A stretch of 64,000 bases of DNA from positions 2,542,001 through 2,606,000 of the forward strand of contig OZ218962.1 of NCBI GenBank assembly GCA_965112735.1, in the 5' to 3' direction. Below, in pieces: positions 931-19,947 of this stretch (positions are counted from its first letter, which is position 1; every line of letters starts with the position of its first letter). The notes beneath the pieces are model-generated. The model did not search any database. It had not been told where the DNA came from and saw only the letters and a list, made by a program, of their open reading frames with translations. This DNA comes from Phaeosaccion multiseriatum. Its lineage: Eukaryota; Protista; Ochrophyta, other classes. A program made the position numbers and the translations under genes.

Positions 931-1075
931 CATCCTCCGTATCTTTAGAGGCTCCAGTCCAACTGCAGAGCCTGCTTGGGCGGCACCAGCGAAGCAAACT
1001 TGCGCTCCTCGGTGCTGTATCTGCGGCGAACGACGCCTCGGCTGATCTCTCCTCCCTCTCCGAAGACGGACTTGT
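594..1075. repeat. Inverted duplication: 594-729 is the reverse complement of 932-1075 (end of last coding exon plus stop region of the cyclin fusion gene)
   Basis: + strand gcgcaagtgtgcttcgctggtaccacccaagcaggctcggcaggtgaactggagcctct versus - strand gcgcaagtttgcttcgctggtgccgcccaagcaggctctgcagttggactggagcctct. They translate as [16 protein letters not shown] and [16 protein letters not shown]. Confidence 0.9.
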
Positions 1076-1284
1076 GTACGCGATGCAAGTCTTGCACGCA
1101 CGCACGCACATCGCCGAGCTCGAGCTTCATCATCAGAAGCTCCTTTCCCTCGCGGTCAGTGCCGATACAGCTGGTACTGCTCCTGCTACCATCACCGCCA
1201 TCACCCCTCCTTCCGCGGCCACTGCTGTCGCCGTAGCTGCTGCTGCCATCGTAGTTGCTAGTGCTACTGCTGCTGCTACTACTG

Positions 1285-1318
<34 letters not shown>

Positions 1319-4300
1319 AGCCTGTCACGCTTGTGAAGGCGACGCTGGAAAGCTCCTCAGGCCAATACGGCATATCGAGTAAGTAGAGGGCGAGCACAAA
1401 GCAGCCAATGGCCACCACAGACGGACGGTAGCTGCTGGTGACCTGTGGTGGGCAGAGAGAGAGAGAGGAGGTGGAGCGAGGTAGTGCAGAAGGGGGAGGG
1501 GCCGCGAGAGGGGGACAGACAGTGAGAGGGAAAGAGAGAAACAGAGCGGCCCTTGTGGTTAGTGCGATGCTGGAAGGAAGGAAGGAAGGAAGGAAGGAAG
1601 GAGTCTACCCATACACGCATCGCACCCCCCCTACAATTGTTCTTTGTCTTCCTCCCGTCTGCCTGTGCCCCATTGGCCCATGTGCCTCTGCTTGCCCTAC
1701 CTACCATGCACTACCTACCATGCCCTGCATCCCCTACCCTCCCTGACCCTCTGCCCTTCCCTCCCCTCTCCTCCCCTCCCCTCACCTGAATGTCCCCCAG
1801 AGAGGCCTCAGCAATGAACATACTCAGGTACAGCACCCTTCCCTCCTGCATGCGTTTGAGCGCGTCACAAGCCTCCACCGCCAGTCGGAGGAAGTCCAAC
1901 GAGGTGGGCACCACGAGACGAAAGTGTGTGGTGTTGAGGACCTGCTCCTCCATGTCGAGCACCTGAACAAGAGGGGCGGGAAGAAAGGAAGGAAGGGAGG
2001 GAGGGAGAGGGAGGGAGGGAGAGATGGCGGGGAGGGAGGGAGTGAGGGAGGAAGAGAGACGTCAGACGATGGCGTGCCGGGGAGGGAGAGAACAAGATAC
2101 AGAGAGGGAGAAGTATCGAGAAAGAGGGCGTGAGAGAGGGACAGACAGACAGAGAGAGAGAGAGAGTGCGCACCTGGCCGGGTTTGTATGCGCCACTGTC
2201 CGTGGCGGCAGTGAGGTGCTCCACGCCAATGTAGCTCACGTCCTCGCATTTAGACGCCAAGTGGAGGCAAGCTGCAGCCACAAGCTGACGCTCTGACACC
2301 TTGACCCTCCTGTGTATGTGTTTGCGTGTGTGTGTGCGTGTGTATGCGTGTGCGCGTGTGTGTGTGTGTGCGTGTGCATATGTGTGTGCGTGGTGTGTAT
2401 GTGTGTGTTTTGCAACAGAGAGGGAGAAGAGAGGAGGGGGTTGAGAGAGGAGAAGAGAAAGAAAAAGTTCTATTCGGCCTTCTATGTACTTGAGAGAAGG
2501 AGGGAGGGAGGGAGGGAGGTAGAGGAGAGAGAGGGGCGTAGAGGAGCAGAGTAGGGAGGATCACAAAAAAAGGCAGCTCACGTAACTAACTAACTAACTA
2601 ATTGACTCTCTCATCTCTCTATCTCCCTCCCTCCCTCCCTCCCCACCCTCCTCCTCCCTCCCTCCCTCCACTCCACTCACCTGTGCCCGAGGTAGTCATC
2701 CATGCAGCTCACCGCGAGAAAGACAGTGCGATGACAGCGGTTGAACACATTCACCACATCCATGATCCACTCCACCAGACAAAGGCGATCCTCGGCCCCC
2801 ATCAACGCAGGACGCTCCACCACAGCAGTTGGTGATTCAGCAGCAGCATTGCCCCCTGGGCCCATGGCAAGGGCAGGAGGAGGTACAATGGGTGCCTCCG
2901 CCCCAGCCTCCGTCTCAGCTCCAGCGACGACCGCAGCAGCAGCCACAAGGAGAGGATTGGGGTGAGGGACGGAGAGGTGTCCGAGTTGTGGTTCTTCCTC
3001 CCCTCCTCCTCCTCCTCCTCCTCCTCCTCCTCCTCCTCCTCCGCCGCCGCCGCCGCCGCCTCCGTCGGGGTGCTCGTCTTCCAGGTCCATCTCGTGCACC
3101 ACCTCCTCATCCAGTGTAGGGGCCACTCCTGCCGCTCCTGCCATCTGTGACTGTACCTGTGCCACACCTCCTTCCCCTGCCCCTGCCTCTGACCCATGCG
3201 CTGTTGTGGATGGAGCGGGATGGGTGCTGCCTCCTCCTTGCTCCTCGCCCCCCCCCTCCGGCCCACTGCGGCCTTGACTCAAGCGACACCCGTGCGGAGA
3301 CAGCAAGGGTGCCGGCGGTAGAGCAAGGGGAGGGATGAGGGGAGGAGGCTCAGCGACGAAGTTCCGGTTCGGGCAAAGGTCCCTTTCCAGAGTGAGCCAG
3401 TGCGAGCGGAAGAGATAGAGGGTTTCCGCCTTTGACCCCTTTAGTCTTTCCATGGGGGACAGTTTCAGTCCCATCAGCCGACGGGGAGGTGGAGGTGAAG
3501 TACTAACGGCAACGGAAGCACCACACGATGTAGCAGCACGTGCCACTCCCGTCGCAGCTGCCACCCCGTCAGAAGGACAAGGAGGAGGAGAGGTTTGAAG
3601 CGGAACCGCACATCCCACTCCACCACTATCGCCTGCAGCGGTTGGTGCTACGGCAGCAGTCGTCAGGCCTGAACCAAGCTGCTGTGCTCCTCGAATTGGA
3701 CGCCCTGGGCTCCTCACCGTCGCATTCGGGGTCCGACTGGGCGTTGCAGTCACATCTCCTCCTCCTCCTCCTCCTCCTCCTCCTGCTCCTCCTTCCCATC
3801 TTCCGGGTCTGGCGGCCCTCGGAGCAGCCACAGCAACAGCAGGGTCACTTAAGGCTGCAGCAGCAGGGGTGGTCGATTGAACTGAAGTTTCGATACCAAC
3901 ACGAGGAGCAGGAGCAGGCGCACCCCCAGCAGAAGGAGATTCCGCAGAAGGAGATTCCGCAGCAGCACTGCCTGCTCGGTCAACACCACCCCCGCCTCCC
4001 CCGCCTGCGTGCAGGTCAGCTCCAACAACGTTTTCTCTCTCGCTCTCTTTCTCCATTGCAGCAAAGTACGGGTGGCGCAGCGCCGCCTCTGCAGTAATGC
4101 GCCGCTCGGGGTCGATGACGAGCATCTTTTCCAGGAGGTCGATGCCCAGGGGGTCCAGCTCCAGCTTGGCGAACATAGCCTCGAGCTTGCCTTGGCAGCG
4201 CCAGTCGGGATAGGCCTTGTGACTGAGGGAATGTTGGGGGCATACGGAGGGGCGGGGGGGGAGGGGGAGGGGAAGTTGGGTGCGTGTAGGGGGGCGGGGG

Positions 4301-7300
4301 GAGGGTGTATAGACTGGAAACGGGAGGACCGCGAGAGGGAGGGCGAAAGAAGAGTGTGCCAGCGCGGTAGAGAGAGAGAGAGAGAGGCAAGATAGAGAAG
4401 CAAGGGAAAAGGCGACGCCAACAAACCAATCCACCTTGCTCCCTTCCTCCTCCGTCCCCTCCCCTCCCATATATACCCCGCACACACGTACGTGTAGTTG
4501 GGCAATTTATCAAAACCCGGCCAAGTCTTGTCCACCGGCGTGCCCATCATTTGAAACATTTGAAACAGTTGATCAATCTCCGACGACCCTGTGAAGAGTG
4601 GCTCCCCCAGCACCATTTCTGCGAAGATACACCCCACGCTCCACAGATCCACGGCAGCGGAGTACGTTTGTAGGCCCATGAGGATCTCGGGGGGGCGGTA
4701 CCAAAGAGTCACCACCTGTGAAAGGGAGAAGAAATTGTAGAAACATACATACACAAGAGGGGGGGGGAAAAAGACAAAAAAGAATGTGAGTTGGATGTGT
4801 TTACAATCGTGAAAAGGACAGAACAGAAGCCAAAGCACGCCCTCGCCCATTGCCCTTAGTCCACTCATTTGGTGAGGTGGGGTGAGGTGGGGTGGGGTGA
4901 GGTGAGGTGAGGTGGCCTGTTCCTACCTCCTTGGTGTATACTCCATGCGGGTAGCCCGTGAGGCGGACCAGAGCGAAGTCGCTGATCTCGAGTTTGGCAC
5001 CCTCGAGGGGGGAGCCGGGGTTGGGCCCTGAAACAGGTGAGAAGGGCGCCTTAAGTCAGTGTGGATGGCCGTGGATGGCCCGGCTCAACAACACAAGGGC
5101 TTCGATACACAGCTATACAATATAAACCGACGAGATGTCTCCCTTTCCTCTACACCCTTCGCCCTTTCACCCCGTTATCATACCCTATACCCCGCCCCCA
5201 CACACCCTTTACTCCATACCCCATACCCTACATATATACCCCACACACCCTTTACTCCATACCCCATACCCTATACCCTATACCCCACACACCCTCCGTA
5301 CCCCATACCCTATACCCTACATATATACCCCACACACCCTTTACTCCATACCCCATACCCTAAACCCTTCATCCCTCACCTGGCACGAGTAGCAAGTGTT
5401 TAGGCTTGAGGTTTCGATGCAGTACACCTCGGCGGTGGCAGTAAGCGATGCCCGACAGGAGCTGGCGCAACAGAGACCGCACGCATGAGTGAGGAATGGG
5501 CCGATGATCTTCACGCCGCAACGCCGAGTGCTGCTTTTGTTGCTGCCGAGGGGGGGGCTGTGCCTCACTTGTCGTCGAATCCGACATGGCCGGGACTTGC
5601 ACTCCTCCTCCTCCTGCTGCTGCTCCTCCTGCTGCTGCTGCTGCTGTACCACCAACTGCTACAGCTGCTCCCCCACCTCCGCCGCCGTCGGATGCTTGGT
5701 CGCTGCCCTCGACGTGCAGAATAGCGTCAGCTAAGGCGTTCAGACTGCTCAATCCGCCATTCCCTCCTCCTCCTCCTCCTGCTCCTACCCCATCACCACT
5801 AGCACTGCCATCAAGACTAGCCGCAGCAGCAGCAGGAGGAGGAGGAGAGACTAGGACAGCAGCGGGAGTAGGAGTGGCACCAGCAGCACCACCAACTCCA
5901 CCACCACCACCACCCCCACCCCCTCCTCCTCCTCCTCCTCCTCCTCCTCCTCCTCCTCCACTTCCTCCGTTCCTAGGCAGGAAGCTATGCAGAGTGCGAG
6001 GCACAAAGTCGAAGAAGCACCTAAGCTGATGCCTGTGGAGCACCACCCGCCTCAGCAGAGACACATTGGGGTGATCCATCTGCCTCAAAACCGTGAACTC
6101 ACGCAGCATGTAATAGGGAATGCCCTCTCCCCCCGGGTACACGCGAGCACGCTTCATGGCGTACGTGTGCCCGGTCACCCGGTCACGGACCTGTCGGTGT
6201 TTTGTGTGTAAGTGTATAAGTGTGTATGCGTGTGTGCGTGTGTGTATGTGAGAGAGAGAGAGAGACAGTGTGTGTGTATTGTGTGTGTGCGTGGGGGGGG
6301 GTATGGGTGGGTGGAGAGGGAGAAGAAGGGGGGGGGGATGCTTACGGATTGTCATGCACACCCTACTTCTCTTGCCTCGCGAAAGCTCAAGCAGCGGCAC
6401 CCGCCTCACACTCCCAGCCCCACGTAAGCCCCACACAAGCCGTACGTAAGCCCAATGTAAGGCTTATGTAAATCTTACGTGAGCCCCATGTAAGTCTTCC
6501 GTAAGCCCAACGTAACCCCTACGTACGTACCTCGTACAGAAGCCCCTCCGTGCCCTCCCCCCGCCTGCCCCTGTTGACCAGGCGGCCCCAGTTTAGGGAT
6601 CCGTCTGGAAGAGTCCAGCTCATGTTGTTCCACAGCACCGGGCTCTGACATGGAAATATCGATTGATTCCCACACAGGGGACAGAGGACGAGGAGGCGGG
6701 GAGAGCAGCACAGTTGGTGATACAGCAGCAGAAGAGTGGCAAGTATGCAGGCATTGTATGGGTGAGAGGTCGGGGGGGGAGTCAGGCAAAAGGTAATCTC
6801 TCTTCTCATCCTCTCCTCCTTTTCCCTCTTGTCTCACTCTGTTCTCTTCTCTCGTCCCTCCCTCTATCCTTTTCTCTCCTTCCTGTCTCTCTCCCCTCTC
6901 CTTCCTTCCCCGTCTTCCCCTCTTACCTCAGCATTCGTCTTCCACCTCCCGCATACCGCCGATATCGTCGCCAGTCCCTCCAAGTCAATGGGCCTTGCCT
7001 TTCCCCGTCCCTCCTCCTCGGCGTGCACAAAGAAAGAGAACACTTCTCGCAGTAACTGAGCCCCCAATCCCTCGACCTTTGTGCGGTCTCCTCGCATAAC
7101 CCTCTCCACCGCCTTGCTGTCGCCGTTGGCACCACTACTACTCTGCTGGTTCGCGTCCTTTATTCTGGGCAGTTGGTGATACAGCCGCACCCCGGGACCG
7201 CCCCGGGGAGAGGTACAAGGCAGTTGTTGTCGTGAGAAAGGCCCAACGTCCAACGAAAGTGGCGGTAGTAAAGGTAACGACTTTGCTCGGGTGCCGCCTG

Positions 7301-8642
7301 CCTCGACGACGCCTTCTCCTTCTCCTTCCTCGTCCTCCTCCTTGTCGTCGTTTTTCTCTAGAGCCTGCTCTTGCAGTAGATTGGTCCCTCTCACAACACT
7401 CTTCTTGGCCTTCTTCCAGCTGCTGCCACTGTCGTAAGCACTTCCGTAACCGTCGCCACAGCTACCCCTGCTGCTGCTCTTGCTCTTCCTCCGCCTTCTG
7501 CTGCTCTTCTCCCTGCCACTGCCAGCGCCAGTTTTAGGAGTGGCAGCACCAGTGTCGGGAGTGGTGGCCATCGGTGAAGAACGGACGGTGCTGGCCCTCT
7601 CACTTGTGCTGCCATCGCCGCTCTCGCTGTGTGGGGGAGAAAAGGCTGAGACTTCTGACCCAGAGCGAGTCTTTCGCTTCTGAGTGGGCGTCCCGGTGGG
7701 TGGCAGAGAGAAGCTTGGCGAAGGTGATCCCACCGGCGGTAGCGGTGGATGCGGGTGTGCTGAGAACGGCGTTCCTCCTCCTCCTCCTGCTGCTCCTGCT
7801 GCTCCTGCTCCTGCTGCTGCTGCTGCTACTACTACTACTGCTGCTGTGTCAACAGCTGCTTTTGCTGCTGCTTCATCTTCCACGCCCTGTGCCGATGACC
7901 TGGGGCGCCGCCGACTGACAGCAGCAGCAGCCGAGGAGGAGGAGATGGTGGTGGGGACAGAAGAAGGCGAAAGGGGGGAGAGAGGGAACCGCGCGGGTGC
8001 CTCTGTTGCTCCTGTTGCGGTAGTCCCTGGTGCTGCGGCTGTTGCTACTGCTGCTGCTTTGGTGGATAGCCTGGTGGAGTACCGCCGCGGCAGCTGCTCC
8101 GCTTGGGTTCCGGAGGAGTCACCGATCGCCTCCGATGACGCGGGAGGTGCCTGAGCGGGAAGTGCTTCCGATTCGAGTACCAAATCTGGAATGTGCCCTC
8201 CCCCCGTTGCGGACCCGGCTACGTGCACTACTTCTGCTGCTGCTGTGCCTCCTTTCGAGAATGTTACTGCTTCTGCTGCTGCTTCTGCTGCTGCTTCTGC
8301 TGCTGCTTCTGCTGCTGATGATGATGATGATGCTGATAATGCCGATACTACTGTTGATTGTGCTGCTGCTGATGGAATGGACGATAATGATGCTGACGCT
8401 AAGGGGTAGGAGGAGGATAGGTGCAGTGGCGCGGGAGGGACCTGTCCTTGTGCACTCCTCCGCCGCCTTGGTTTACCGCTACTGCTTGACGCGAAGCCGC
8501 GGCGATCACCACTGTCTCCGCTACCGCGTGTCCTTAGCACCCGGCTGCTGGTGGGGGTGTTCGCTGCAGAATCGTCATCTAAATGACATTGACCATCCTT
8601 CAAGTCGCCGCCCCGGCTTCGCTTACCACGACCTCTCCCCAT
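945..8642 (-). CDS. F-box / CDK-like (probable pseudokinase) / cyclin fusion protein, 9 exons
   Basis: In-phase GT-AG exons: 8642-6927, 6644-6531, 6190-5380, 5027-4927, 4715-4492, 4222-2681, 2309-2174, 1962-1786, 1442-945. F-box-like: [13 protein letters not shown]...[16 protein letters not shown]|SPVLW. Kinase: [41 protein letters not shown]|[38 protein letters not shown]. Cyclin: [58 protein letters not shown]. Confidence 0.85.
5180..5368. repeat. Intronic minisatellite built from ATACCC(C/T) heptamers with a ~43 bp higher-order unit
   Basis: The unit ccccacacaccctttactccataccccataccct recurs about 3 times, plus a diverged copy. Confidence 0.75.
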
Positions 8643-14438: not shown

Positions 14439-16900
14439 TCACTGTACAACGAAAGTCTGCGAACTACTTTGCACGACTTTGCCTGTCGCAGCGGATTTCG
14501 CGCTCCACACTACCTCGATGTCAATCTCGCGAGGGTTGATCTTTGCTCGTGCGAGCTTCAGCGTCCCAGTCACCACGTCTCCTACTTCTAATACAGGCCG
14601 CCCGGAGGGTGCAAACCAGAGCAGCGTCTGTTTCCAGTGAGTTGGCTTGGAGTGGGGTCCGGTGGAGAACCACACGCTGTTGGTGAGCCCCAGTGAGGGG
14701 GCGTCGAAGCCAACGTCGAATGAGACTATGAGACCGCTCACAGGCCCCGCCTCCTTGACGATGAGTCTGAGGAAGGGGGGGAGAGAGAGAAACAGAGGGA
14801 CAGAGAGAACACACACACACAGAGAGAGAGTGAGAGAGAAGCAGAAGAAACCAACGCACAGAGAATGTGAGAGCGCCAACGGGCGGGCGTGTGGGAGCGA
14901 TTTCGTGCTTCCCCACCGCAGCAGGAGCAATGCGCCTAAACCCGATGCTCACTAAGCAAGGACGTATCACGCCTTGCACCTATAGAGTCTTTCACCCCCG
15001 CCCCTCCTCCCCTCCCTCCCCCGCCAGCAGCCCTCCTCCCCCCTCCACCACAGTCAAAAGTCCAAGTCAAGTCACTCACGTGAAGGGGGCCTCGAAATCA
15101 AGGTCCGAGTCCACCAAGCCCATGAGATCAAAGTCCTTCACCAGGCAGCGATCTGTGACTATGAGCGCGCCGTCTACATTCTCCACCCCAGCCTCAAGCA
15201 ATACCAGCTCCTGCACACGCGTATAGTCCAAACCGTGTACGTCCTTCCACCACTCGAGCCGCTTGTCCGGGTCTTTCATGGCCTCAACGAAGAGAGGCGT
15301 CTTGTTGGGCAGTACCACCCCGCCCGGGCGAAGGTATGTGTCTCGGGCGTAGAGCACAGCGGGCAGCATGGTCTCGTAGAAGAGGCAGTAGCCCATCCAC
15401 TCGGATACGATGATGTCCACCTGAGGGGGGAGAGGGGAAAGGAGGGGTCAGACGGGTGGGTGGGTGCATGCGTGGGTGATATTAGAGGCAAGAGGGAGGG
15501 AGAGAGAGAGAACGTCTTCTCCACCTCAGAGAAGATCAAAGAACAAAAAGGTCCCGTGTGCGGACTCCCTCCCGATTAGAGGAGGAGAGACTTTGCCCCC
15601 CTTCCTCCCGTACCTTGTCGACGGGGAGCTTCACCTCTTCCATCTTGCCCTGCAGCAGCGTGATCACGTCGGAGGAGAAACCATTGTCTGCCACAAGCTT
15701 GGTGGCGTCAAGGATGACATCGCTCATGTCCACTCCGATGACGCGGGAAGCCCCTGCCTGGGCCGCAAACATGCTGAGTACGCCAGTGCCGCACCCGACG
15801 TCGAGCACAACCTTTCCTTTGAAGAGGTCAGGATTATCTTTGATGGCTCTCTCGTAACTGCCTGTCCGAACCGTGTCGCGCAGCATCGTCTCGTGGATAC
15901 CAAAGTGGGCGTAGCTGTGTGTTGCGAGTGTTTGTGTGCGTGTGTGTATGTGTTGGAGGAGGGGGGGTGGGGGCGAAGAGGATGAAGGGGAGTAGCAGAG
16001 AGAGGCTGTGAACAATGCGAGACAGGGGAGAATTACACAACAAGGGCAAAACTCTTTCCTCGAGTGCCTTGCGCCTCCATGCACTGGTCGGCATATTGGA
16101 TCTTCCCCCATGAATCATACGAAGGCAAGTGGTGATATCAGGAGCTATCGATCTCACCTGTGAAAGTAGTAGCCGTCGTTGTCGACCTCGTCTGGCTCTC
16201 CTTCACCAGTCGCCAGCGTGTTGAGCAGGGCACCGCTACTAACAAGCTTTGCACGTGCATCCGCCAGGGCCTCACGCAGCAACGCGTTCTCTTTCCGCAG
16301 TCCTTCCATCTCGGCCAGAGATGATGATGATGGTAGTGGGGCTGCCGCTCCTGCTTCTGCTGGAGGTGGCAAAGGCGCGGCACCGGGGAGACTGTCATCC
16401 TCGCTATCATCGCTTTGCTCTCCGCCTCCTTCCCCGTCTTCTACCTCCACCAGGTCTTCCAGGCAGAGCAGAAGGCCGTCATTCTCCAGCACGGGTCGCA
16501 GGAGGTCCTCTCCATCCAGGCTTAGATCCCCTGCCAGTAGTCTCTCCTTTACCAGAGCGGCATCCTCTGGTGACACCGCTGCTGCTGAGCTTTTCACCTC
16601 TCTCCTAATGCAATTGACCAGCTTGATGCGGCCGTAGAAGTCGAGACGGAGGGCCTTGCAGAGCTCCACTACATCCACGCCGTGCGTCTCCTTATCCGAC
16701 TCTACGCAAGCCCGACCGCTGCGATACAGTGTCGACGTGAAGAGACTCTGGCAGCGCTCGCCGAATGCATCCTCCCCGTCCTCCCCTCCAAAGCATCTCT
16801 CCTCCTCGTCCTCCTCCCACCCTTCACCATCACTGTCTGCCAGTCTGGCCTCTACTAGCGCTGCGCCACTGCTCAGCGAAGGAGCAGCAGCGGAAGCCAT
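14439..16900 (-). CDS. PRMT3: Protein arginine N-methyltransferase 3, 4 exons
   Basis: N-terminal LDFYGRIKLVNCIR and LRPVLENDGLL (PRMT3-type). Catalytic core: YAHFGIHETMLRD, VVLDVGCGTG, VDIIVSEWMGY, STGP..KPTHWKQT. Confidence 0.92.
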
Positions 16901-17317: not shown

Positions 17318-17774
17318 CTACCGAGAAGTTGGAGGCACGTTAGGGGTCCAGTCTGGTTGTGGGTCTGTATTGGTGCCCACGTCCACAGTACTCCTCCTCC
17401 TCATAGAGCCCCTCTCGGCCGCCCCCTGGTGGTCGTCTCTTCTGGGCCGCATCTCTGTGGCGCCCTCCTCCTCACGGCCACTGGACCGCTTCATCTCGGC
17501 CGGCTGCTGCTGCTCCTGCTGCTGCTGCTCCTGCTGCTGCTGCCGCCGCTGGTGTATCACCAACTGCCGCTGCTGCTGTATCACCAACTGCTGCTGCTGC
17601 TGTTGCTGCTCCTGCAGCTGCTGTGCTCCTTGTCTCCCACCCACTAACATGTCCGCAGCAGCGTCACCCTCCACGCCTTCTCGTTGTGATCGCTCGGGGC
17701 CTCCTACTTGAAACGACGGTCGCGAGCCCACTTCACGCCGCTGCTGCCGCCGCCGCTGCTGCTGCATTACCAGG

Positions 17775-17816
<42 letters not shown>

Positions 17817-17951
17817 CGCTGTTCCTGTTGCTGTCGCAGGAGCATTTCCTGCTGCTGGCCGAAGAAGCGTTGGCGGCACTCATACTCCCGCCGGTCCTCG
17901 TGTGCGGAACAGTACGGCTGCGGCTGCCCGTGAGGACGATAACACTCGTAC

Positions 17952-17982
<31 letters not shown>

Positions 17983-18510
17983 GCTTCTGCTGTATCGCCC
18001 ACTGCTGCTGCTGTATCGCCCACTGCTGTGCACGTTGCCGCCTCTGCCTTTCACACTCCTCCTCCTCCTCCCATCTTCGTCTCGATTCATCAATCTCTCG
18101 CTGAGTTGGACGAATCCCGTAGGATGGAATCCGAGGGCTGCTCCGATCCACCCCGGAGCACTGCCCCAGGTCATCCGGCTTCAACGCCGCCCTCTCCTTG
18201 AAGGGCTCGACCATTTCTCGCTGCGGCTCTGGGGGTATCCTTCCCGGTAGTGGGGTTCCCCACTCTTGTCCGTGCCTCGAGTACGTGCCTCCTCCTCTGC
18301 CGTGCAGCATCGCTCTTCTTTCCGTTTCCCACACCTGCTCGTCTCGCACCATCCCTCCTCCCTTGTCGCCGCTGCTGCTGCGCCTACGCTTCCTGTGGCC
18401 GCTGCTCTTGTAGTTGTTGTTGTCGGTGGTGGTGGTGGTGTTATTGCCGTCACCGTCATTGTCGTCCTCGTCGCTGTTGTCGTCGTCGTCGTCGTTGTTG
18501 TTGTTGTTGC

Positions 18511-18574
<64 letters not shown>

Positions 18575-18612
18575 GCTGTTGTTGTTGTTGTTGTTGTTGT
18601 TGTTGCTGTTGC

Positions 18613-18703
<91 letters not shown>

Positions 18704-19444
18704 ATTGTTGTTGTTGTTATTGTTGTTGTTGTCGCCCTTGCTGTCCTTGCTCATGTTGTTCTTGCCATTGTTCGTGGTATCGGTGTTGGCGTCTTTGTGG
18801 TTTTCGTCGTCGTTGCTGTTGTCGTTGCTGCTGCCATCGACTGGCGCTCCTTCCTGCCCTAGGCCCTTCTCTCTCGCGTGGCAACTCGGCCGCCGCCCCC
18901 CTCCGGGTGCTGTGTGTGGCTGGCACCGCTTCTGTAGCGTCCTCTTCCGGCTGCGTCTCTCCTCACGGCGCCCTGACGAGCCCCTTCCTGCCTCTCCTGC
19001 TCCCACCTCTGCCTTCCGGCTGCTGCTGCAGCTACCGCTGCTTGTGGATAGTGTTGTAGGAGGCCGGTAGTAAGAGCTGGGCGCAGCAGGTGTCGGAGCA
19101 AGCTTAGAACGCCGTTGGAGGGGCGAACTCGAAGCTGCTGCCGACGATATGTCAGCTGGACGCTGTCTCCTCCTCATCACAGAGGCTCCTGCCGCACCTG
19201 CATCGGGGCCGAGACTGGACCCATATCCCGCCTGCACTGGGAGGCCCACGAGCTGCTCTTCCTTCACTCGAGCACCTCTGGGCGGTTGTTGGTGGCACTG
19301 GTGGTTACTACCCCCTGGCTCCGTTTTGCTGCCTTTTCCAGCAGTCTCGCTTTCGTCCTTGACCGTCTTGCTGGTGCCCCCACAGCTGTTCCAAGGACCG
19401 AGGATGTCCGCGACTGGGCCGATTACTACTGCCGCTGCCACCAT
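17318..19444 (-). CDS. Hypothetical low-complexity protein with poly-Asn and poly-Gln tracts
   Basis: About 2.1 kb open frame from the ATG at 19444. Non-repetitive parts (e.g. WETERRAMLHG, IPPEPQREMVEPFKERAALKPDD) are also stop-free. No recognisable domain. Confidence 0.5.
18494..18730. repeat. Long (AAC/GTT)n trinucleotide microsatellite
   Basis: About 80 near-perfect units; encodes the poly-Asn tract. Confidence 0.95.
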
Positions 19445-19947
19445 CAGCCTATGCAGAGGCGCAGTACGAGAACAACTGCACCAGAAGGGCTGCTGGAGTA
19501 AACGCTGCTGGGGAACGAAGGAGCGAGGCTTTCCACTTACTACTATATAAAATATCACTCTCAATGTCGTCCGTATCCATCTCCCTCAAATGCCCAGTGG
19601 CGGCCCTCTCTTTTCTCCTACCATCCTTTATAACACATAGGTACGCCACCTGAAGTATGGATTGCCTTTGCCCGCATTCTGATTGGGCGGGGAGGGGAAT
19701 CAACGAAAAAAGACGTTAACACCGTTGTGAGAAGTCGGTCTGCCCGAAACCCCTTAAAAAAAAGGGGAAAAAAAGGAAAAAAGGGGTGATTTCCCCCAAG
19801 CAGCCAGAGGGAGAGCTCCTGCATGGTATAGTTAATAAAGGAGTGAAGCACGAAGGGAGAAGTTACACCACCTCGCCTCTGCAAGGAAGGACGGTGCTTT
19901 TTTGCCTTTTTTTTGTTTCGGAAGAATTGAGCATTATTGTAACACCC

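Follow-up and report, generated by a model that had tools for sequence, protein, structure and literature searches.

The subject here is a predicted gene of the ochrophyte alga Phaeosaccion multiseriatum, found on the minus strand of a 64,000-nucleotide stretch of DNA (contig OZ218962.1, positions 2,542,001 to 2,606,000, assembly GCA_965112735.1), which in its whole length is referred to as the ‘window’ and to which all positions given below refer. Judged from its sequence, this locus is a single gene, and it would encode, within one chain, an F-box, then a seemingly inactive relative of the cyclin-dependent kinases (CDKs), and then a double cyclin box. The reading favored, with a probability of roughly 0.6, is that this dead CDK-cyclin-F-box protein, built on a one-gene, three-domain locus, acts as a substrate receptor of an SCF (Skp1-Cul1-F-box) ubiquitin ligase, which is a plausible role. 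The gene is at the same time a new, unusually long member of what is a known, widespread, and unstudied family.

The gene consists of nine minus-strand exons, E1 to E9, extending from 8642 to 945, with GT donors and AG acceptors and with frame kept throughout. Summed exon length is 5316 nt, that is, 1772 codons, for a predicted protein of about 1770 residues. An earlier note on this DNA, made from its letters alone, had described nine exons splicing in phase, and this description is borne out both by reading of the GT-AG sites and by the collinearity of related proteins. Particularly, relatives P0001, P0002, and P0005, as compared with the window using tblastn, match its minus strand only, and do so collinearly, with ends of matches falling at ends of exons and with neighboring residues of a given relative adjoining across exon junctions. 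For P0002 the residues matched are, in exon order, 184-221, 219-290, 293-343, 343-379, 375-451, 452-508, 771-805, 805-854, and 854-908.

The sixth exon (E6; 2681..4222, minus strand) is a single open frame that relatives match at both of its ends. There the kinase continues to about 4045, the cyclin N-box starts from about 2796, and between the two is an open, low-complexity linker of about 415 codons, i.e., about 1.25 kb of uninterrupted frame, which is very unlikely to occur by chance within random sequence of like composition. As kinase end and cyclin start thus share an exon, and as relatives are collinear, two separate genes are very unlikely. A broader possibility is that the model wrongly merges two or even three neighboring genes (F-box, kinase, and cyclin), and for this it may be said that no public RNA run contains the locus and that boundaries between genes might lie concealed within its long stretches of low complexity. 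Against such merging, in addition to the one open exon that joins kinase to cyclin, the intron just ahead of the kinase’s glycine loop is also the one across which the F-box reaches completion, the MMETSP collection has transcripts of relatives, marked as complete open reading frames (ORFs), that carry all three parts in one chain, and CDK-cyclin fusions of Phytophthora infestans have been confirmed by reverse-transcription PCR (RT-PCR; PMC3019232). Mistaken merging is the least probable of the alternatives that are considered here, and is given hardly any weight.

Long inserts, rich in Gly, Ala, Ser, and Pro, and open and in frame, interrupt the protein at three sites: inside of the kinase (E3; about 5960-5531, Gly/Ala-rich and about 145 codons), between kinase and cyclin (E6; ~4044-2797), and inside of the cyclin C-box (E9; ~1320-1160). 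Relatives possess short inserts or none at all at these sites, and it is owing to such low-complexity inserts that the window protein is approximately twice the length of its P. infestans relatives. In-frame introns may be hidden within these inserts. DNA contigs from four runs of one sample display 0 base differences and 0 indels over 1300-7200, with the runs recognizable as DNA because their contigs include the introns. Apparent joints in these contigs were considered as possible splicing and rejected, being due instead to a dispersed 15-base word. That word, CAGTTGGTGATACAG, is present in 17 copies in the 64-kb window (with up to one mismatch) versus 0.01 expected, and four copies are in the gene: at 2826-2840 (E6), 5644-5658 (E3), 6711-6725 (intron 1), and 7170-7184 (E1), three of them coding. 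Other repeats associated with the locus are a (CTGT)n microsatellite at 850-945, directly after the stop codon, and, at 5200-5378, tandemly repeated GGGTAT-like units, of which intron 3 for the most part consists.

The F-box is split by the first intron. E1 (6927..8642, minus strand) has 572 codons, with its ORF running from an ATG at 8642 and with a GT donor at 6926-6925. Its N-terminal region is long, of low complexity, and probably disordered, and its last ~47 codons (7067-6927, minus strand), which I call here the ‘E1 tail’, encode F-box helices 1 and 2. E2 (6531..6644, minus strand; 38 codons, its AG acceptor being 6646-6645 and its GT donor following 6531) then supplies F-box helix 3 (SPVLW...), a conserved NW..(F/L) linker, and, at 6560-6543, the glycine loop, GEGTEG, of the kinase. 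Translation across the 6927/6644 junction reads ...CGRWKTNAE|SPVLW..., and completion of an F-box at this junction, as the earlier note had proposed, is supported both upon such reading and by the abutting of profile halves, as follows.

A profile of 67 positions was made from relatives only, i.e., with the window’s own rows left out, and was scanned over 1455 stop-free segments from the six frames of the 64-kb window. Two places alone are singled out by it, as abutting halves: the E1 tail, matched at profile positions 4-39 with 15.8-18.7 bits, and E2, matched at positions 43-64 with 17.3 bits, the next unrelated segment scoring less than 6 bits. In family alignment A3, which had each of these two pieces on a row of its own, the two also abut, without gap or overlap. 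The profile of that alignment, as compared with all solved structures, finds about 45 F-box proteins and no other protein below an E of 0.1, the best match being Skp2 (E 1.1e-8), which is followed by Fbw7 (2.3e-6), FBXL5, and beta-TrCP. Individual relatives match Pfam F-box-like as well, at 29.2 bits for P0005, 40.9 for P0013, 43.6 for P0174, and 45.1 for P0185, in each case immediately N-terminal to the kinase. The motif that the earlier note had termed F-box-like is upheld as an F-box domain (Pfam PF12937 / PF00646), then, at the level of the family, given relatives scoring to 45 bits and a family profile that leads to Skp2, Fbw7, and other solved F-boxes.

Presence of this segment is, in addition, regular. 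The dead-kinase signature is carried by 104 of the proteins fetched; 97 of these match the relatives-only F-box profile, and six of the other seven look to be N-terminally cut, having their HRN motif less than 200 residues from their start. The AlphaFold model of the 68-residue F-box segment of P0005 consists of three short helices, with a predicted local distance difference test score (pLDDT) of 85, and about 44 of the top 50 rows of its Foldseek search are F-box proteins in Skp1 complexes, all with E-values above 0.7. For the E1 tail on its own, Pfam, which was run on single exons one at a time, provides F-box-like as its sole family match, at 11.5 bits (E 0.27), in a test that covers only part of an F-box since intron 1 divides the domain; against solved structures, a phmmer search with this tail gave no match; and BLASTP of it against the F-box of Skp2 aligned just 14 residues. 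Taken from sequence, the segment ahead of the kinase is best described as an F-box, of which the window copy is somewhat atypical, and the F-box would seem to be a constant part of the family.

What follows the F-box is a kinase of CDK type. E3 (5380..6190, minus strand) encodes its N-lobe, including the AMK lysine and, in place of the PSTAIRE of CDKs, the sequence PYYMLRE, along with the catalytic loop HRNLKPKH at 5419-5396 (minus strand), and its best matches among solved structures are CDK1 and CDK2, at 62 bits. E4 (4927..5027, minus strand, with relatives matching 5028-4918 by tblastn) carries the activation loop with its conserved Thr (YTKE), and has DFA at 4980-4972 (minus strand) where DFG is usual. 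The P+1 loop and helices F-G are found in E5 (4492..4715, minus strand; Pfam Pkinase E 7e-14), which is 67-68% identical to relatives. Pfam assigns, exon by exon, Pkinase to E3, E5, and the start of E6, Cyclin_N to the end of E6 and to E7, and Cyclin_C to E9, such that the CDK and cyclin N and C domains of the earlier note are recovered as described.

Not stated in that note, and bearing on mechanism, is what is a defining trait of the family, which is that its kinase is catalytically dead. This can be seen as a systematic replacement of catalytic residues. In the glycine loop, GEGTEG, a Glu stands at the position of CDK Tyr15 (GTEG for GTYG); in the catalytic loop HRN stands for HRD and KPKH for KPxN (KPQN to KPKH in alignment with solved CDKs); and DFA stands for DFG. 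With the Asp of HRD, the Asn of KPxN, and the DFG not intact, a canonical, active CDK was rejected. Kept are the ATP-site Lys (of AMK), the helix-C Glu (of PYYMLRE), the Asp of DFA, the T-loop Thr, and the P+1 loop. Among 22 aligned family members, GTEG, HRN.KPKH, and DFALVR are near-invariant, and all of these motifs are found in the window, while PYYMLRE, the T-loop Thr, the P+1 loop, and helix G are strongly conserved across the family. Such a pattern is that of a protein apparently under selection for binding rather than for catalysis.

It may be asked nevertheless whether this kinase could be active by some unusual mechanism, that is, as a self-activating CDK for which an F-box provides for turnover only. 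Some kinases without canonical motifs are still active, and retention here of the ATP-site Lys, helix-C Glu, Asp of DFA, and T-loop Thr would be consistent with activity. Opposing this, neither the catalytic-base Asp nor the metal-binding Asn is retained (HRN, KPKH), the DFG Gly and glycine-loop Tyr are replaced too, and these changes hold in nearly every member. With the P. infestans CDK-cyclin fusions, the Asp-to-Asn change (subdomain VIb) has been noted previously and the proteins were judged to be inactive (PMC3019232). An active kinase is viewed as quite improbable.

The cyclin portion begins in E6, with DRLCLVEW at the position of the MRAIL motif, and continues into E7 (2174..2309, minus strand), which encodes the cyclin N-box core (Pfam Cyclin_N E 4e-7, 30.1 bits versus a cut-off of 23). 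E8 (1786..1962, minus strand; 40-47% identity to relatives) encodes the end of the N-box and the start of the C-box, and E9 (948-1442, minus strand, with stop codon TAA at 947-945) the cyclin C-box along with its Ser-rich insert (Pfam Cyclin_C E 1.8e-7, 31.6 bits versus a cut-off of 22), for which the best solved matches are to cyclin A2, and are weak. More can be said using P0005, the cyclin part of which matches solved cyclin A2 at 104 bits, cyclin B1 at 81, cyclin D at 70, cyclin F at 60, and cyclin E at 58. By these sequence comparisons the double cyclin box would be described as cyclin A-like. Descent as an orthologue of cyclin F was considered and rejected, given 104 bits to A2 and 81 to B1 versus 60 to F and given, too, the kinase that is found between F-box and cyclin. 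As cyclins A2 and B1 score above cyclin F, the name “Cyclin-F”, which UniRef applies automatically to many of these relatives, reflects domain mix rather than orthology. An MRAIL-like patch, HR.MLVDWLVEV, is kept within the family, its HR.MLVDW being strongly conserved there, with that of the window, DRLCLVEW, more diverged, though with its Arg, Leu, and Trp kept.

The AlphaFold model of full-length P0005 has a mean pLDDT of 84 and a predicted template-modeling score (pTM) of 0.85, and places three short helices N-terminal to the kinase. A pTM of 0.85 for a three-domain chain indicates a domain arrangement that is, within the model, confidently placed. The 50 structures that match this model best all are chains of CDK2 in complex with cyclin A or cyclin E, with template-modeling (TM) scores, as normalized to the CDK2 chain, of about 0.9. 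These modeling results provide indirect support for an intramolecular pairing that is CDK2-cyclin A-like.

How broadly this architecture is distributed may be seen from searches that used relatives or parts of the window gene. A 77-residue N-lobe, searched against 1.84 billion representative proteins, yields as top matches mostly proteins of 590-980 amino acids, along with some shorter fragments, and the N-lobe match in those top proteins starts 70-390 residues from the N-terminus. Nearest are fusion proteins of Tribonema minus and Phaeothamnion confervicola, with 66-70% identity, and Aphanomyces astaci is at 50%. Among 28 long matches, 22 have Cyclin_N, 18 have Cyclin_C, and 15 have Pfam F-box-like (E<=0.01). 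A word search for P0005 provides oomycete members from Phytophthora, Peronospora, Bremia, Plasmopara, Albugo, Pythium, Lagenidium, Saprolegnia, Achlya, Thraustotheca, and Aphanomyces, members from the early-branching brown algae Discosporangium and Choristocarpus and also from Chrysoparadoxa, as well as the labyrinthulomycete Hondaea, MMETSP transcriptomes, and, as a partial match, the dinoflagellate Durusdinium. The MMETSP transcripts of relatives that are marked as complete ORFs have all three parts in one chain. The window gene itself has a CDK-type kinase, then Cyclin_N, and then Cyclin_C in one chain, along with HRN, KPKH, DFA, and GTEG, and by such sequence features is assigned to a conserved family of oomycetes, ochrophyte algae, and a labyrinthulomycete, to which a dinoflagellate may be added by its partial match. 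One protein of this family, of which the members are otherwise from stramenopiles and alveolates, is P0224, which has F-box-like at 26.3 bits and is labeled as from the chytrid fungus Batrachochytrium salamandrivorans; its presence in a chytrid assembly could represent contamination or gene transfer.

Part of this family has been described previously. Four CDKs of P. infestans possess C-terminal cyclin domains, as confirmed by RT-PCR, and relatives of these fusions were reported from other oomycetes, from ciliates, and from Theileria (Judelson and Ah-Fong 2010, PMC3019232). The statement within the earlier note, that CDK-cyclin chimaeras have been noted in stramenopiles, is confirmed by that publication. 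The P. infestans fusions are of the same family as the window gene, consisting of a CDK2-class kinase and then Cyclin_N and Cyclin_C, and two P. infestans proteins, P0198 and P0213, were among the matches. PMC3019232 does not mention F-box, Skp1, or ubiquitin in this context. For the P. infestans T30-4 models P0198 and P0213, the first residues fall at position 30 of the F-box profile, which has 67 positions; in both, the kinase begins near residue 43, and orthologues from P. cactorum and Achlya have the whole of the F-box. From such comparison the P0198 and P0213 gene models appear to be N-terminally truncated inside of the F-box, and this truncation may be why the F-box is not part of the account of PMC3019232.

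The three-part layout is less novel than had been supposed, being broadly distributed and bearing names already in public databases of proteins. Records from Achlya and Thraustotheca, that is, are called “cyclin-dependent kinase with F-box domain”, and one from Plasmopara “putative protein kinase domain, F-box domain...”. The word search with P0005, as a survey of the kind which that note had proposed, finds family members in many oomycetes, in ochrophyte algae, and in Hondaea. Full-text literature searching gave no publication on any naturally occurring protein of the F-box-CDK-cyclin kind, and the cyclin-CDK fusions that it did return are synthetic yeast constructs.

Two animal systems are useful for comparison. 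With cyclin F, the hydrophobic patch of the cyclin domain recruits SCF substrates. Animal cyclin F (FBXO1) and the window family share having both an F-box and a cyclin within one chain, without catalytic CDK activity, and differ in that the window family has a whole dead kinase between these two. The second system is one in which Skp2, CDK2, and cyclin A in animals meet in one assembly, which ubiquitinates p27. The likeness to that SCF-Skp2/Cks1/CDK2/cyclin A assembly (PDB 7b5l) is that the best solved matches in the window family are Skp2 for the F-box, CDK2 or CDK1 for the kinase, and cyclin A2 for the cyclin. In the animal assembly, however, the three parts are carried on separate chains, with an active kinase, whereas in the window family they form one chain, with a dead kinase. 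The leucine-rich repeats of Skp2, too, are absent from the window family, and a role there for Cks is a guess. The likeness, as an analogy, would be functional only.

The mechanism envisaged is as follows. The fused cyclin would clamp the dead kinase within the same chain, in the manner of cyclin A on CDK2, as modeling suggests. The resulting pair would not phosphorylate but would keep its binding surfaces, i.e., the P+1 and activation loop with its Thr, helix G, and the MRAIL-like cyclin patch, and with these it could bind CDK-type partners, whether S/T-P substrates, RxL-bearing proteins, CDK inhibitors, or Cks-bound phosphoproteins. The F-box then would dock this module on Skp1-Cul1, and the bound CDK substrates, CDK inhibitors, or Cks-bound phosphoproteins would be held there for ubiquitination. 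Such a protein would resemble the assembly of Skp2, CDK2, and cyclin A, but in a ‘hard-wired’ form. A wider claim, that stramenopiles and perhaps other lineages of the stramenopile-alveolate-rhizarian (SAR) group possess a conserved class of SCF receptor, for which the literature search gave no description, one combining in a single chain a Skp2-like F-box, a dead CDK, and a cyclin A-like domain, and trapping CDK substrates or inhibitors, is more tentative, and is given somewhat less than an even chance.

The same binding surfaces might be employed otherwise. That is, a dead CDK-cyclin could be a stoichiometric decoy or scaffold that soaks up CDK inhibitors, Cks, CDK-activating kinase (CAK), or Wee1-type regulators, with the F-box serving mainly towards the protein’s own instability or cell-cycle timing rather than towards delivery of substrates. 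Conservation of binding surfaces along with loss of catalysis would fit with such a role. So too would general knowledge of F-box proteins, which commonly are auto-ubiquitinated within SCF, and a suggestion made for the P. infestans fusions, which is that the fused cyclin domain might regulate protein stability (PMC3019232). Set against this is that, in about 100 of the relatives fetched, the F-box comes immediately before the binding module, an arrangement that is usual for substrate receptors. A decoy or scaffold is held to be unlikely, if considerably less so than an active kinase.

Several points do weigh against the substrate-receptor reading, or at least against parts of what it is built upon. 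The window’s E1 tail, at 11.5 bits, is below the Pfam F-box-like cut-off of 24.3, and the hidden Markov model check which the earlier note had proposed stands for Pkinase, Cyclin_N, and Cyclin_C but not for this one exon’s share of the F-box. In the window F-box, a Gly replaces the Pro that most F-boxes have in their LP motif, and the loop that joins helix 1 to helix 2 is longer by eight residues. The Foldseek matches to the P0005 F-box are individually non-significant, the domain being very short. In the window cyclin, the patch is less canonical than that of the family (DRLCLVEW versus HR.MLVDW). The CDK-cyclin interface is derived from the pTM and from the kind of structural matches obtained rather than from coordinates. 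Lastly, the splice model is based on homology rather than on transcripts, with public RNA runs being without this stretch.

Elsewhere in the window are two further features. A 748-codon ORF at 17318-19564, minus strand, has very long Asn and Gln runs and includes two copies of the 15-base word (as QQLVIQQ). ORF pieces at about 15076-16111, also on the minus strand and with the motif VLDVGCGTG, suggest a protein arginine methyltransferase-like gene, one which appears to be unrelated to the fusion gene.

If the protein is truly an SCF receptor, then a CDK-cyclin pair, once an enzyme, would have come to serve for recognition in the degradation of proteins. Many algae, as well as oomycete pathogens, would in that case possess a cell-cycle regulator that is without direct plant or animal counterpart. 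This would represent a separate branch of cell-cycle control, the counterpart of which animals assemble from separate proteins.

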